From Ranitomeya imitator (Eukaryota), in the NCBI RefSeq assembly GCF_032444005.1, contig NC_091283.1, forward strand, positions 43,028,001-43,092,000: a stretch of 64,000 nt of DNA, given 5' to 3'. Numbering within the stretch: position 1 is the first letter of the stretch; every line of letters begins with the position of its first letter. The translations under genes were made by a program, and so were the position numbers. The notes below the pieces were generated by a model. That model ran no database searches and had not been told where the DNA came from. It was given only the letters and a program-made list of their open reading frames with translations. Of the stretch, positions 25,990 to 31,725 are shown piece after piece.

Positions 25990-26435
25990 ACTCATCTGAA
26001 AGGAGACGTCCTAGAAGATAGGAGAAGGGCAAATGTCCCTATCTTCAAAAAAAGGAAAGAAGACAGAGCCAGGAAATTACAGGCCAGTGAGCCTTACTCC
26101 TATACCAGAGAAGATCATTGAAAAAATTATTAAACAGCATGGATGTACAGTAAGTAAGTGTACTTGGATAAGAATACGTTAATTAACCAGATCCAGCATG
26201 TAGCAAAGTCATGCCAAACTAATCTAACGTCCTACTACGATGGAATCACTGACTGGGTGGATCAGGGAAATGCGGTAGATATAGTGTATCTCGACTTCAG
26301 CAAAGCATTTGATAAAGTATCTCATACTATCATTATTGAAAACAATGACCAAGTATGGGATTGACAAGGCTACTGTTAGGAGGATTTGTAATTGGGTCAG
26401 TTGACTGTACTCAAAGAGTGGTAATGAATGGTTGC
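25990..26435 (+). mobile_element. Degenerate CR1 RT fragment
   Basis: NYRPVSLT-like aattacaggccagtgagccttact; YDGITDWVDQGNAVDIVYLDFSKAFDKVSH. Confidence 0.88.
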
Positions 26436-27052
26436 CTAAGAGATCAGAGAAAGGCAGCACTCACTGCTCCTGACGCAATCCTTTATTAACAGAGGTTAAA
26501 AAATAGCGGCGGGTGGAATGTGTGGAGACAACAATCGGATTTAGACTCGTAGAAGCGCACATAGCGCTATTATTCAATAACAAAATGATCACTCCATGAT
26601 GTCATATCCTTTATAGTCATTATATAAAACCGCGCTAGTGATAGTAGGTATTGTGCTATACTATGAATAAGAACATATAGTTTGAAACGCTTCAGTACAA
26701 CCATACTTAGGTGAATTGAGCACGCCTTTTTTTTAACAACAAGGAAATTTTTTTTGAAAATTTTTCTAATAAACTGTACATACATGCTAGCCACCTTAGG
26801 GAGAGACCCAAGTTGGGCTAAATGTAGCGGGACGAAAGAGACCGAAAAGCCCTCTACTCAAAGGAAATACATAGTGGATGCTTTCCTGAAACGGAAAGTA
26901 CTTGCAAGCAGCATAATACAAAGAATAGCAGGTTTACCCAGAATCCTTTGCAGTAGGCGGAGCTATGCAAATCATCTCTTTCCACCCCTGTCTAATCCAC
27001 AGCGCTTGGAACCGCCAAGCGTGCAATGCTGCGGATTAGTTTCTAAATTTAC

Positions 27053-27133
27053 ACAGCCAACCAATTCCTACCTGTGGACACGTGTTTCGGGCTTTAGGCC
27101 CTCATCAGCACAGGGCTGGAATTGGTTGGCTGT
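27053..27133 (-). ncRNA. Type I hammerhead ribozyme, copy 1
   Basis: Minus strand: CCUGUG-CUGAUGA-GGGC(CUAAA)GCCC-GAAA-CACGU-GUC|CACAGG, plus a 16-bp distal helix I ACAGCCAACCAAUUCC/GGAAUUGGUUGGCUGU; predicted cut between 27077 and 27076. Confidence 0.92.
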
Positions 27134-27178
27134 ATGGAGTGGGGCTCGGTGAGCAAGCGATACATACATGCTAGCCAC

Positions 27179-27356
27179 CTTAGGGAGAGACCCAAGTTGG
27201 GCTAAATGTAGCGGGACGAAAGAGACCGAAAAGCCCTCTACTCAAAGGAAATACATAGTGGATGCTTTCCTGAAACGGAAAGTACTTGCAAGCAGCATAA
27301 TACAAAGAATAGCAGGTTTACCCAGAATCCTTTGCAGTAGGCGGAGCTATGCAAAT
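27179..27356 (-). promoter_or_regulatory. Putative snRNA-type promoter, repeated every 384 bp
   Basis: SPH/Staf-like TACCCAGAATCCTTTGCA 27319-27336; GGCGGA ~27340-27345; octamer ATGCAAAT 27349-27356; minus-strand TCTCCCTAAG 27188-27179 resembling the Xenopus PSE TCTCCNNATG (recalled consensus). Confidence 0.65.
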
Positions 27357-27436
27357 CATCTCTTTCCACCCCTGTCTAATCCACAGCGCTTGGAACCGCC
27401 AAGCGTGCAATGCTGCGGATTAGTTTCTAAATTTAC

Positions 27437-27517
27437 ACAGCCAACCAATTCCTACCTGTGGACACGTGTTTCGGGCTTTAGGCCCTCATCAGCACAGGGC
27501 TGGAATTGGTTGGCTGT
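27437..27517 (-). ncRNA. Type I hammerhead ribozyme, copy 2
   Basis: Identical to copy 1 (+384). Confidence 0.92.
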
Positions 27518-27820
27518 ATGGAGTGGGGCTCGGTGAGCAAGCGATACATACATGCTAGCCACCTTAGGGAGAGACCCAAGTTGGGCTAAATGTAGCGGGA
27601 CGAAAGAGACCGAAAAGCCCTCTACTCAAAGGAAATACATAGTGGATGCTTTCCTGAAACGGAAAGTACTTGCAAGCAGCATAATACAAAGAATAGCAGG
27701 TTTACCCAGAATCCTTTGCAGTAGGCGGAGCTATGCAAATCATCTCTTTCCACCCCTGTCTAATCCACAGCGCTTGGAACCGCCAAGCGTGCAATGCTGC
27801 GGATTAGTTTCTAAATTTAC

Positions 27821-27901
27821 ACAGCCAACCAATTCCTACCTGTGGACACGTGTTTCGGGCTTTAGGCCCTCATCAGCACAGGGCTGGAATTGGTTGGCTG
27901 T
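27821..27901 (-). ncRNA. Type I hammerhead ribozyme, copy 3
   Basis: Identical to copy 1 (+768). Confidence 0.92.
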
Positions 27902-28204
27902 ATGGAGTGGGGCTCGGTGAGCAAGCGATACATACATGCTAGCCACCTTAGGGAGAGACCCAAGTTGGGCTAAATGTAGCGGGACGAAAGAGACCGAAAA
28001 GCCCTCTACTCAAAGGAAATACATAGTGGATGCTTTCCTGAAACGGAAAGTACTTGCAAGCAGCATAATACAAAGAATAGCAGGTTTACCCAGAATCCTT
28101 TGCAGTAGGCGGAGCTATGCAAATCATCTCTTTCCACCCCTGTCTAATCCACAGCGCTTGGAACCGCCAAGCGTGCAATGCTGCGGATTAGTTTCTAAAT
28201 TTAC

Positions 28205-28285
28205 ACAGCCAACCAATTCCTACCTGTGGACACGTGTTTCGGGCTTTAGGCCCTCATCAGCACAGGGCTGGAATTGGTTGGCTGT
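28205..28285 (-). ncRNA. Type I hammerhead ribozyme, copy 4
   Basis: Identical to copy 1 (+1152). Confidence 0.92.
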
Positions 28286-28588
28286 ATGGAGTGGGGCTCG
28301 GTGAGCAAGCGATACATACATGCTAGCCACCTTAGGGAGAGACCCAAGTTGGGCTAAATGTAGCGGGACGAAAGAGACCGAAAAGCCCTCTACTCAAAGG
28401 AAATACATAGTGGATGCTTTCCTGAAACGGAAAGTACTTGCAAGCAGCATAATACAAAGAATAGCAGGTTTACCCAGAATCCTTTGCAGTAGGCGGAGCT
28501 ATGCAAATCATCTCTTTCCACCCCTGTCTAATCCACAGCGCTTGGAACCGCCAAGCGTGCAATGCTGCGGATTAGTTTCTAAATTTAC

Positions 28589-28669
28589 ACAGCCAACCAA
28601 TTCCTACCTGTGGACACGTGTTTCGGGCTTTAGGCCCTCATCAGCACAGGGCTGGAATTGGTTGGCTGT
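28589..28669 (-). ncRNA. Type I hammerhead ribozyme, copy 5
   Basis: Identical to copy 1 (+1536). Confidence 0.92.
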
Positions 28670-28972
28670 ATGGAGTGGGGCTCGGTGAGCAAGCGATACA
28701 TACATGCTAGCCACCTTAGGGAGAGACCCAAGTTGGGCTAAATGTAGCGGGACGAAAGAGACCGAAAAGCCCTCTACTCAAAGGAAATACATAGTGGATG
28801 CTTTCCTGAAACGGAAAGTACTTGCAAGCAGCATAATACAAAGAATAGCAGGTTTACCCAGAATCCTTTGCAGTAGGCGGAGCTATGCAAATCATCTCTT
28901 TCCACCCCTGTCTAATCCACAGCACTTGGAACCGCCAAGCGTGCAATGCTGCGGATTAGTTTCTAAATTTAC

Positions 28973-29053
28973 ACAGCCAACCAATTCCTACCTGTGGACA
29001 CGTGTTTCGGGCTTTAGGCCCTCATCAGCACAGGGCTGGAATTGGTTAGCTGT
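28973..29053 (-). ncRNA. Type I hammerhead ribozyme, copy 6
   Basis: Core identical; one substitution (29048) in distal helix I. Confidence 0.92.
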
Positions 29054-29356
29054 ATGGAGTGGGGCTCGGTGAGCAAGCGATACATACATGCTAGCCACCT
29101 TAGGGAGAGACCCAAGTTGGGCTAAATGTAGCGGGACGAAAGAGACCGAAAAGCCCTCTACTCAAAGGAAATACATAGTGGATGCTTTCCTGAAACGGAA
29201 AGTACTTGCAAGCAGCATAATACAAAGAATAGCAGGTTTACCCAGAATCCTTTGCAGTAGGCGGAGCTATGCAAATCATCTCTTTCCACCCCTGTCTAAT
29301 CCACAGCGCTTGGAACCGCCAAGCGTGCAATGCTGCGGATTAGTTTCTAAATTTAC

Positions 29357-29437
29357 ACAGCCAACCAATTCCTACCTGTGGACACGTGTTTCGGGCTTTA
29401 GGCCCTCATCAGCACAGGGCTGGAATTGGTTGGCTGT
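29357..29437 (-). ncRNA. Type I hammerhead ribozyme, copy 7
   Basis: Identical to copy 1 (+2304). Confidence 0.92.
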
Positions 29438-29740
29438 ATGGAGTGGGGCTCGGTGAGCAAGCGATACATACATGCTAGCCACCTTAGGGAGAGACCCAAG
29501 TTGGGCTAAATGTAGCGGGACGAAAGAGACCGAAAAGCCCTCTACTCAAAGGAAATACATAGTGGATGCTTTCCTGAAACGGAAAGTACTTGCAAGCAGC
29601 ATAATACAAAGAATAGCAGGTTTACCCAGAATCCTTTGCAGTAGGCGGAGCTATGCAAATCATCTCTTTCCACCCCTGTCTAATCCACAGCGCTTGGAAC
29701 CGCCAAGCGTGCAATGCTGCGGATTAGTTTCTAAATTTAC

Positions 29741-29805
29741 ACAGCCAACCAATTCCTACCTGTGGACACGTGTTTCGGGCTTTAGGCCCTCATCAGCACA
29801 GGGCT
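29741..29805 (-). ncRNA. Type I hammerhead ribozyme, copy 8 (5' distal arm cut off by the insertion boundary)
   Basis: Core and 6-bp proximal helix I intact; the array ends at 29805. Confidence 0.85.
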
Positions 29806-29974
29806 AATAAACTGTTGCTTTAAAAATATTGTTTTCCTCTGGAACTGTTGCTGGATGAATTCTTCTGATTCATTTTGCACTTGGCGGCCAACACAGGCTT
29901 CACATCCCTGCACTACCGGTGGACACACTTGATGGTGAGCTGGATATAAATCCCCCTTTTCTATATTGTATATG

Positions 29975-30441: not shown

Positions 30442-31725
30442 TCTACTATATAATTGTCTAAGGGTCACTTCCGTCTTTCTGTCTGTCCTTCTGTCTCTGT
30501 CTGTCGCGGATATTCATTGGTCGCGGCCTCTATCTGTCATGGAAATCCAAGTCGCTGATTGGTCGTGGCAAAACAGCCACGACCAATCAGTGACGGGCAC
30601 AGTCCGGAAGAAAATGGCCGCTCATTACTCCTCGGTCAGTGCCCGGCGCCCGCATACTCCCCTCCAGTCACCGCTCACACAGGGTTAATGCCGGTGGTAA
30701 CGGACCGCGTTATGCCGCGGGTAATGCACTCCGTAACCGCTGCTATTAACCCTGTGTGACCCCAACTTGCCTATGCGGCATCAATAGTAAAAAATGTAAT
30801 GTTTAAAAATAATTAAAAAAAAACAAAAAACGTGCTATACTCACCCTCCGTAGTCCGCCGAGCCGCTCACGCCTGCCACCATCTTCCGTTCCTGGCGATG
30901 CATTGCGAAATTACCCAGAAGACTTAGCGGTCTCGCGAGACCGCTAAGTCATCTGGGTAATTTCGCAATGCATCCTGGGAACGGAAGATGGTGGCAGCCG
31001 CACGCGTATCGCTGGAGCTTCGGTGGATCCCAGGGGGTGAGTATATAACTATTTTTTATTTTAATTATTTTTTTAACAGGGATATGGTGTCCACACTGCT
31101 GTATGCTACGTGGGCTGTGTTAGATACCGCGTGGCTGCTATATACTACATAGGCAGTGTTATATACTACGTGGGCTGTGTTAGATACCGCCTGGCTGCTA
31201 TATACTACATAGGCACTGTTATATACTGTGTGGGCTGTGCTATATACTATGTGGGCTGTGTTATATACTGCGTGGGCTCTGCTATATATTACGTGGCCAC
31301 TGTTACATACTGCGTGGGCTGTTATATACTACGTGGCTGCTATATACTGCATGGGCTGTGCTATATATTACGTAGCCAGTGTTATATACTGTGTGGCCTG
31401 TGTTATATACTATGTCGCCTGTGTTATATACTGCGTGGCTGCTGTATACTGCGTGGGCTGTGTTATATAGTACGTGGCTGTGTTATATACTGCGTGGCCA
31501 CTGTTATATATTGTGTGGCCTGTATTAACGCATCGGGTATTCTACAATATGTATGTATATAGCAGCTGCATAGTATATAGCACAGGCCACGTAGTATTTG
31601 TCTGCTATATACTACATGGGTCCTATATACTACGTGGCCTGTGCTATATACTATGTGGTTGCTATATATATACATAAATACATATTCTAGAATACTCGAT
31701 GCGTTAGAATCGGGCCACCATCTAG
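30442..31725 (+). mobile_element. Non-autonomous Helitron, copy A
   Basis: A|TCtactatataattgtctaagg start; 3' hairpin ctcgat..atcggg then CTAG; internal ~22-bp minisatellite. Confidence 0.82.

Follow-up and report, generated by a model that had tools for sequence, protein, structure and literature searches.

Every unit of a tandem hammerhead ribozyme array in the window (the whole 64-kb stretch of frog DNA that was analysed) was observed to carry a set of motifs arranged as in the promoter of a vertebrate snRNA gene. On balance, with confidence somewhat better than even, we read the array as a member of the amphibian satellite-2 lineage of non-LTR retrozymes, recently inserted and still polymorphic, in which each unit has an snRNA-type, probably Pol II, promoter. 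The evidence supports the architecture, and from the architecture we infer the function, namely factor binding, the polymerase, the start site and a material contribution to the RNA that is seen. An earlier note on this DNA had suggested a promoter of this type aimed at the ribozyme. The non-random motif cluster, the fitting spacing and a box shared with axolotl speak for that suggestion, but the proximal sequence element (PSE) 10-mer, when taken alone, occurs at chance frequency.

Results

A recent and polymorphic tandem insertion

The array (Table 1) contains eight hammerheads, eight clusters resembling a distal sequence element (DSE) and eight PSE-like boxes. When read along the minus strand, which is the ribozyme strand, these make seven complete promoter-to-ribozyme pairs, since the first hammerhead has no promoter upstream of it and the last PSE-like box points toward the flank. 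The array units differ at two bases alone (28924 and 29048, both in one unit), and no further copy of the 384-bp unit was found outside the array in the 64-kb window. Membership of the non-LTR retrozymes and amphibian satellite 2 implies tandem units of a few hundred base pairs, each with a type I hammerhead, and an insertion bounded by a target-site duplication. Both were observed here, the duplication (CTAATAAACTGT) being 12 bp long and present at both ends of the array. The empty site was also seen, in an X5 RNA contig that fuses 26639-26777 straight to the sequence after 29815. Because this contig carries the allele without the array, the 3-kb insertion is polymorphic; it is also recent, and the family is active.

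Table 1. Positions in the window of the array, its boundaries and the features of its reference unit
Feature	Position	Strand	Details and basis
Retrozyme tandem array	26777..29805	-	7.9 units x 384 bp; TRF period 384, 99% matches
Left target-site duplication copy, CTAATAAACTGT	26766..26777	.	Sequence and empty-site RNA contig X5
Right target-site duplication copy, CTAATAAACTGT	29804..29815	.	Sequence and empty-site RNA contig X5
Type I hammerhead, reference copy	27054..27126	-	HH9-like, 30.1 bits, E 2.3e-5, under the gathering score of 52
Predicted transcription start	27127..27131	-	Arithmetic from PSE at -59/-50
Second conserved box, CTTGCTCACCG	27147..27157	-	About -28 to -18 of the predicted start; pattern CTTGCTCRCYG
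PSE-like box, GGGTCTCTCCCTAAG	27179..27193	-	15 nt, core TCTCCCTAAG at 27188-27179; pattern match and axolotl comparison
Sole TTTT on the ribozyme strand of the unit, potential Pol III terminator	27229..27232	-	RNA contigs read through
SPH/Staf (ZNF143)-like motif, TACCCAGAATCCTTTGCA	27319..27336	+	17/18 against consensus YWCCCRNMATSCMYYRCR; mismatch T at position 13
GGCGGA, weak GC-box-like hexamer between SPH and octamer	27340..27345	+	Read by eye; too short, excluded from evidence
Perfect octamer, ATGCAAAT (ATTTGCAT on the ribozyme strand)	27349..27356	+	Pattern search
Last PSE-like box of the array, facing host DNA	26795..26809	-	Pattern match; 18 nt from the fixed 3' end of the element

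Ten DNA contigs with differing flanks, together with several RNA contigs, stop at one and the same element edge, 26777 (equivalent to 27161 and 27545 in other units). The 3' end of the family is fixed, 18 nt past the PSE-like box and distinct from the ribozyme cut, and its 5' ends vary. Reverse transcription therefore seems to begin at a defined point inside the unit. In DNA run X1, the summed word depth of the unit at 26778-27160 was about 4-7e5 and that of the unique flank was 9.76, which suggests a copy number of roughly 5e4, a rough figure in the tens of thousands. Runs labelled as four other organisms contain 63-82% of the 31-mers of the unit, and near-identical units are therefore present in related species.

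A separate high-copy repeat lies just to the left of the array, at 26239-26434. Its depth in DNA run X1 reaches 68,000, and it is also found in the RNA libraries.

The hammerhead and its RNA

At gathering thresholds, Rfam gave zero matches across the whole window, and the hammerhead surfaced at the E-value threshold only. Along the minus strand its parts are CUGAUGAG, helix II (GGGC/GCCC), CGAAAC, the palindromic helix III ACACGUGU and the C after which the cut is predicted, between 27077 and 27076. In X3, one RNA contig terminates at 27076, or 27460 in the neighbouring unit, where it runs into a string that we take for a small-RNA 5' adapter in reverse complement. Its end is therefore a minus-strand RNA 5' end at the first base past the predicted cut, and with the presumed identity of the adapter it is evidence of cleavage in vivo. 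High depth in the libraries and this single contig, with its adapter so recognised, agree with what is expected of a retrozyme, the RNA of which is expressed and self-cleaved at the hammerhead.

The RNA data consist of assembled contigs without direction. Several libraries made from RNA of the same organism contain the unit in full and at high depth, with contigs that run over the unit junction. Such contigs fit a circular RNA of unit length; tandem DNA or multimeric RNA would yield the same. RNA contigs also span the proposed promoter and the predicted start at full depth, as expected for multimeric or circular RNA. A start site near 27129 had no read support in the RNA contigs, where a processed RNA of unit length would look alike, and differences in depth along the unit cannot be read directly, as contigs from other loci contribute to them. 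An excess of RNA contigs exiting the array at its 3' edge was considered as evidence of initiation and dropped, since the DNA run shows the same pile-up at this junction, as follows from the fixed 3' end.

RNA contigs of lower identity (X3 and X5) showed clustered A-to-G differences at 27177-27325 and clustered T-to-C differences at 27330-27480, with almost no differences of other kinds; for example, 10 of 13 A were changed after 27298, and 11 T were changed before 27435. If we read them rightly, these clusters in the RNA contigs are the hyper-editing pattern of double-stranded RNA, in both polarities. Both strands thus appear to be transcribed, and the proposed promoter would then not be the sole source of transcription, since it does not explain the antisense RNA. 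The earlier note had also expected the leftmost PSE (26795-26804) to fire into the flanking DNA, and the RNA contigs lend this expectation no support, although the animals concerned may not allow a test of it. The left flank (26484-26728) has zero depth in X3 and X18, and the left-flank RNA, seen only in X5, comes from the allele without the insertion.

The sense RNA of the unit is predicted to fold strongly (-149.7 kcal/mol, z = -6.7), and the DSE, the PSE-like box and the conserved boxes fall in predicted RNA hairpins. Constraint at the level of the RNA would be a live alternative reason for the conservation of the boxes.

A distal cluster in every unit

In snRNA genes, the DSE contains an octamer together with a ZNF143 site, the PSE is found near -55, and a TATA box is confined to the Pol III class (PMC3499247, PMC2811027, PMC5855946). 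As described in the earlier note, three motifs cluster within 38 bp, namely an SPH-like motif with 17 of 18 positions matched, the hexamer GGCGGA and a perfect octamer, and all eight units were found to carry them. The SPH/Staf consensus used for this match, YWCCCRNMATSCMYYRCR, is in the form written in that note. The SPH-like motif recurs every 384 bp, from 26935 to 29623. With at most one mismatch, 0.19 SPH matches are expected per 64 kb and nine were found in the window, eight of them in the array; for the octamer, 4.35 matches are expected per 64 kb. An extended form of the octamer, TGATTTGCA, is common to the frog unit and the axolotl clone Ax330 (TGATTTGCAC).

Chance was modelled on 20 Mb of simulated sequence, using a first-order Markov model trained on the non-array DNA of the window. 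In this simulation, an SPH-like site arose in a 384-bp unit with p = 1.8e-3 and an octamer fell within 60 bp of an SPH with p = 8e-3, giving p of about 1.5e-5 per unit for the SPH and octamer cluster. The DSE-like cluster is thus non-random, and it is the statistically solid part of the architecture.

To the right of the array, 30905-30990 forms a long near-perfect palindrome within a CpG-rich stretch. At 30964-30981 its arms include, on the minus strand, TTCCCAGGATGCATTGCG, which is close to the ZNF143/SPH consensus, and the palindrome may be either a transposon end or a bidirectional promoter.

A PSE-like box at the expected distance

The core of the PSE-like box, TCTCCCTAAG, differs by one mismatch from the PSE consensus used here, which is that of Xenopus U1/U2 and may not fit this species. 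Rfam placed no snRNA gene in the window, and hence the window provides no PSE of this species for comparison. The core is on the minus strand at 27188-27179, as the earlier note had it, and the distance of about 130 bp beyond the SPH given there was measured as 131 bp along the ribozyme strand. The box has its 3' end 70 nt short of CUGAUGA and 102 nt short of the cut. From DSE to PSE the spacing is about 168 bp centre to centre, a figure that also applies from octamer to PSE, and the SPH and octamer lie about 160 bp upstream of the PSE-like box; these spacings and that from PSE to ribozyme fit an snRNA-type promoter on the ribozyme strand. The arithmetic of that note is also right: with the PSE placed at -59/-50, the start falls at about 27129, some 52 nt upstream of the cut, and the DSE occupies -190 to -227. 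The start so predicted is 52-53 nt before the cut by our count, within the outer stem of helix I and near the 5' edge of the hammerhead. An snRNA-type promoter is expected to have an octamer and/or Staf/ZNF143 (SPH) enhancer some 200-250 bp upstream, and at the level of motifs the frog unit has a candidate for it at the distance just given.

The PSE 10-mer with at most one mismatch is not enriched by itself, with 62 matches found and 54.7 expected in the window. When the match is limited to the ribozyme strand and to 90-115 nt before the cut, p is about 0.012 in the Markov simulation, and the joint p of the SPH and octamer cluster with a PSE match so placed is 1.7e-7. The PSE-like box would be more than a chance match at 9/10 positions, because it is part of a 15-nt block common to an axolotl retrozyme at the equivalent position.

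No consensus TATA was found near -30 in the frog unit; only TGTATGTATCG is present, at -39 to -29, and it is without an axolotl counterpart. In this respect the sequence of the unit agrees with the Pol II class of snRNA-type promoters. Pol II is favoured over Pol III, because a consensus or conserved TATA is lacking and the RNA reads through the single T4 run. A further element of snRNA genes, the 3' box (GTTTN0-3AAARNNAGA), had zero matches in the array. The 3' box would be a feature of the gene rather than of the promoter, and ribozyme cleavage could substitute for it.

Boxes shared with axolotl retrozymes

Two axolotl retrozyme clones, Ax353 and Ax330, printed in ribozyme sense in the supplement of PMC7229834, were compared with the frog unit by eye and with short patterns. 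Around the PSE-like box, frog AACTTGGGTCTCTCCCTAAG and Ax353 AACTTTGGGTCTCACCCTAAG are identical in 19 of 21 columns. Ax353 carries GGGTCTCACCCTAAG 65 nt before CUGAUGA, the frog counterpart being 70 nt before it, and Ax330 has TCTCCCTCTG at the position of TCACCCTAAG in Ax353, so that the form common to all three is TC(T/A)CCCT..G. The PSE-like pattern GGGTCTCNCCCTAAG has an expectation of 0.00 per 64 kb and was matched eight times, always in array units.

The second box reads CTTGCTCACCG in the frog, CTTGCTCACTG in Ax353 (10/11 match to the frog) and CTTGCTCGCTG in Ax330. Its pattern, CTTGCTCRCYG, is expected 0.09 times per 64 kb, and all of its seven matches fall in array units. To our knowledge, this box corresponds to no promoter element. 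It is separated from the PSE-like box by 21 nt in the frog and by 27 nt in both Ax353 and Ax330. The order of the boxes is the same in the frog and the axolotl clones, and helix III (ACACGUGU) is identical in the frog and Ax353. The axolotl spacer between the boxes has no frog counterpart with three or fewer mismatches. What emerges from the compared sequences is a footprint-like pattern, in which the ribozyme core, the PSE-like box and the second box appear to be kept and the spacers do not. By the same comparison, the PSE-like box appears as the best-conserved block outside the ribozyme.

Octamer-like motifs with 7/8 matches occur in both axolotl clones (TTTTGCAT and TGATTTGCAC) at other distances, and Ax353 has half an SPH in reversed orientation, from which the DSE appears not to be conserved in position or orientation between frog and axolotl. 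A relationship to salamander elements is expected of a retrozyme of this lineage. The two boxes and the hammerhead, shared in what is a partial comparison by eye, link the frog unit to salamander satellite 2.

A composite pattern (PSE box, second box and CUGAUGA) was also run in one metagenome scan. It returned a single contig (L001) with neither hammerhead nor tandem repeat, and this was set aside as a chance match. We rejected variation among copies as a guide to constraint, since each inserted copy of a mobile element goes on to decay neutrally.

Discussion

The arrangement described above suggests how the element could be transcribed. Each unit would contain a TATA-less, SNAPc-dependent and probably Pol II promoter on the ribozyme strand. 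Measured upstream from the predicted start, its octamer (Oct-1) and SPH/ZNF143 enhancer would lie at about 190-230 bp and its PSE-like box at about 50-60 bp. Transcription would begin near the 5' boundary of the hammerhead, some 50 nt ahead of the cut. Owing to the tandem layout, the promoter of one unit would transcribe through the units downstream, and the hammerheads would cut this RNA to unit-length pieces that retain the promoter sequence. Because these pieces still include it, every retrotransposed copy would bring its own promoter along.

An alternative that we regard as unlikely is that the unit has no functional internal promoter at all, its RNA arising by passive read-through from neighbouring genes or elements, and that the boxes serve the RNA itself, in circle folding, ligation or recognition by a Penelope-like reverse transcriptase. 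This is close to the position of a 2020 review, in which metazoan retrozymes seem to lack promoters and to rely on read-through (PMC7761336). The apparent transcription of both strands fits read-through, as do the RNA contigs that tie the 3' edge of the element to several different flanks, and with about 5e4 copies, read-through in either orientation is expected. The RNA is also strongly structured with the motifs in hairpins, and the PSE-like box, lying where the fixed 3' end is 18 nt past it, could be a 3'-terminal signal for reverse transcription. Read-through, however, leaves the joint occurrence of SPH, octamer and PSE (1.7e-7), with the spacing and orientation of an snRNA gene, unexplained. 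Against a role in the RNA, TC.CCCT is kept in the frog, Ax353 and Ax330 even though, as judged by eye, the hairpins that surround the PSE-like box do not share one register in the three. A working promoter has, moreover, been reported in the homologous newt element (Coats 1994, as cited in PMC2220036).

Less probable still is that the octamer and SPH form a real ZNF143/Oct-1 module on an ordinary Pol II promoter, possibly derived from a Penelope-like terminal repeat and possibly bidirectional, with no part for SNAPc and with the start elsewhere. ZNF143 and Oct-1 do activate promoters of mRNA type as well (PMC7154149, PMC2811027), the PSE match is weak alone, and a relationship of retrozymes with Penelope-like terminal repeats has been reported (bioRxiv 10.64898/2026.07.22.740005). 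A bidirectional promoter would also suit an RNA pool that represents both strands. Such a promoter would nevertheless fail to account for a spacing that fits a PSE and for the PSE-like box, rather than the DSE, being the block best kept outside the ribozyme. We consider a type-3 (U6-like) Pol III promoter, composed of the PSE and TATGTAT 13 nt downstream, to be very improbable; its transcript would stop at the single T4 and measure about 285 nt. In its favour, snRNA genes of both the Pol II and the Pol III class have the DSE and PSE architecture, the ribozyme strand of each unit has one TTTT, and a hammerhead satellite of schistosomes is cited as having a Pol III promoter (Ferbeyre 1998, in PMC2220036). 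But a consensus TATA is missing at -30 of the frog unit, and the equivalent place in axolotl has nothing TATA-like; the RNA contigs pass both the T4 run and the unit junctions; and a transcript ending there would hold one cleavage site only and could not give RNA of unit length. Newt satellite 2, in addition, is cited in PMC2220036 as transcribed by Pol II.

How retrozyme and satellite-2 RNAs are transcribed is unsettled, with the newt promoter of 1994 on one side and the no-promoter review of 2020 on the other. The word promoter is absent from a 2026 preprint on vertebrate retrozymes, Xenopus included (bioRxiv 10.64898/2026.07.22.740005). The frog element would extend the newt finding to frogs and would argue that the promoter belongs to the element. 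The near-consensus DSE, together with the PSE-like box shared with axolotl, suggests a promoter that is ancestral and selected, and this would explain how a non-coding retroelement is expressed wherever it has inserted. Across the genome, the copies would amount to a very large pool of potential SNAPc, ZNF143 and Oct-1 sites. Tentatively, and at just short of an even chance, we would go further and hypothesise that the amphibian retrozymes of frogs and salamanders are autonomous units with a SNAPc-dependent snRNA-type promoter, the PSE having been kept since the lineages shared the element. Were this true, the genome would hold tens of thousands of extra snRNA-type promoters, and each insertion would set one of them 18 nt from host DNA, facing outward. 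The view of metazoan retrozymes as promoterless and dependent on read-through would then be overturned, and the question would arise whether these promoters compete with genuine snRNA genes for SNAPc, Oct-1 and ZNF143.

Comparison with known systems

A close parallel in layout that is cited in the literature is satellite 2 of the newt (Notophthalmus), another amphibian repeat in which units of about 330-385 bp stand in tandem, each bearing a type I hammerhead with a minimal helix III. In the cited description (Coats 1994, as cited in PMC2220036), it has an internal snRNA-type promoter of octamer and PSE, placed in the unit upstream of the ribozyme and transcribed by Pol II; the promoter predicted for the frog is of the same kind. 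The frog element differs in its host and in its unit of 384 bp, and its likeness to the newt element is drawn from that cited description, not from element positions.

The axolotl retrozymes Rtz_353 and Rtz_331 (Cervera and de la Pena 2020, PMC7229834) share with the frog unit the PSE-like box, the CTTGCTC(A/G)C box, the hammerhead core, their order and similar distances, and Rtz_353 (Ax353) also has the same helix III, ACACGUGU. Their RNAs, too, are expressed and strongly folded, and the elements are tandem and form delimited insertions. In contrast, the remainder of the unit does not align by eye, and where the axolotl relatives have octamer-like motifs of 7/8 at other distances, the frog has a near-consensus SPH and a perfect octamer. 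PMC7229834 describes no promoter, and the no-promoter view in PMC7761336 comes from a later review by the same group.

With the vertebrate U1, U2, U4 and U5 promoters, the frog unit has in common an octamer and ZNF143/Staf DSE and the lack of a TATA box, and where they have a PSE at about -55 it has the PSE-like box as a candidate. It departs from snRNA genes in its product, which is a self-cleaving repeat RNA, and in having no 3' box, so that the ribozyme would make the ends. Unlike theirs, the frog promoter would itself be transcribed from upstream units and would have been retrotransposed to roughly 5e4 places. The schistosome Sm-alpha satellite is likewise a hammerhead repeat with an internal promoter, which is a Pol III promoter as cited in PMC2220036 (Ferbeyre 1998), whereas the frog unit has the upstream layout of DSE and PSE.
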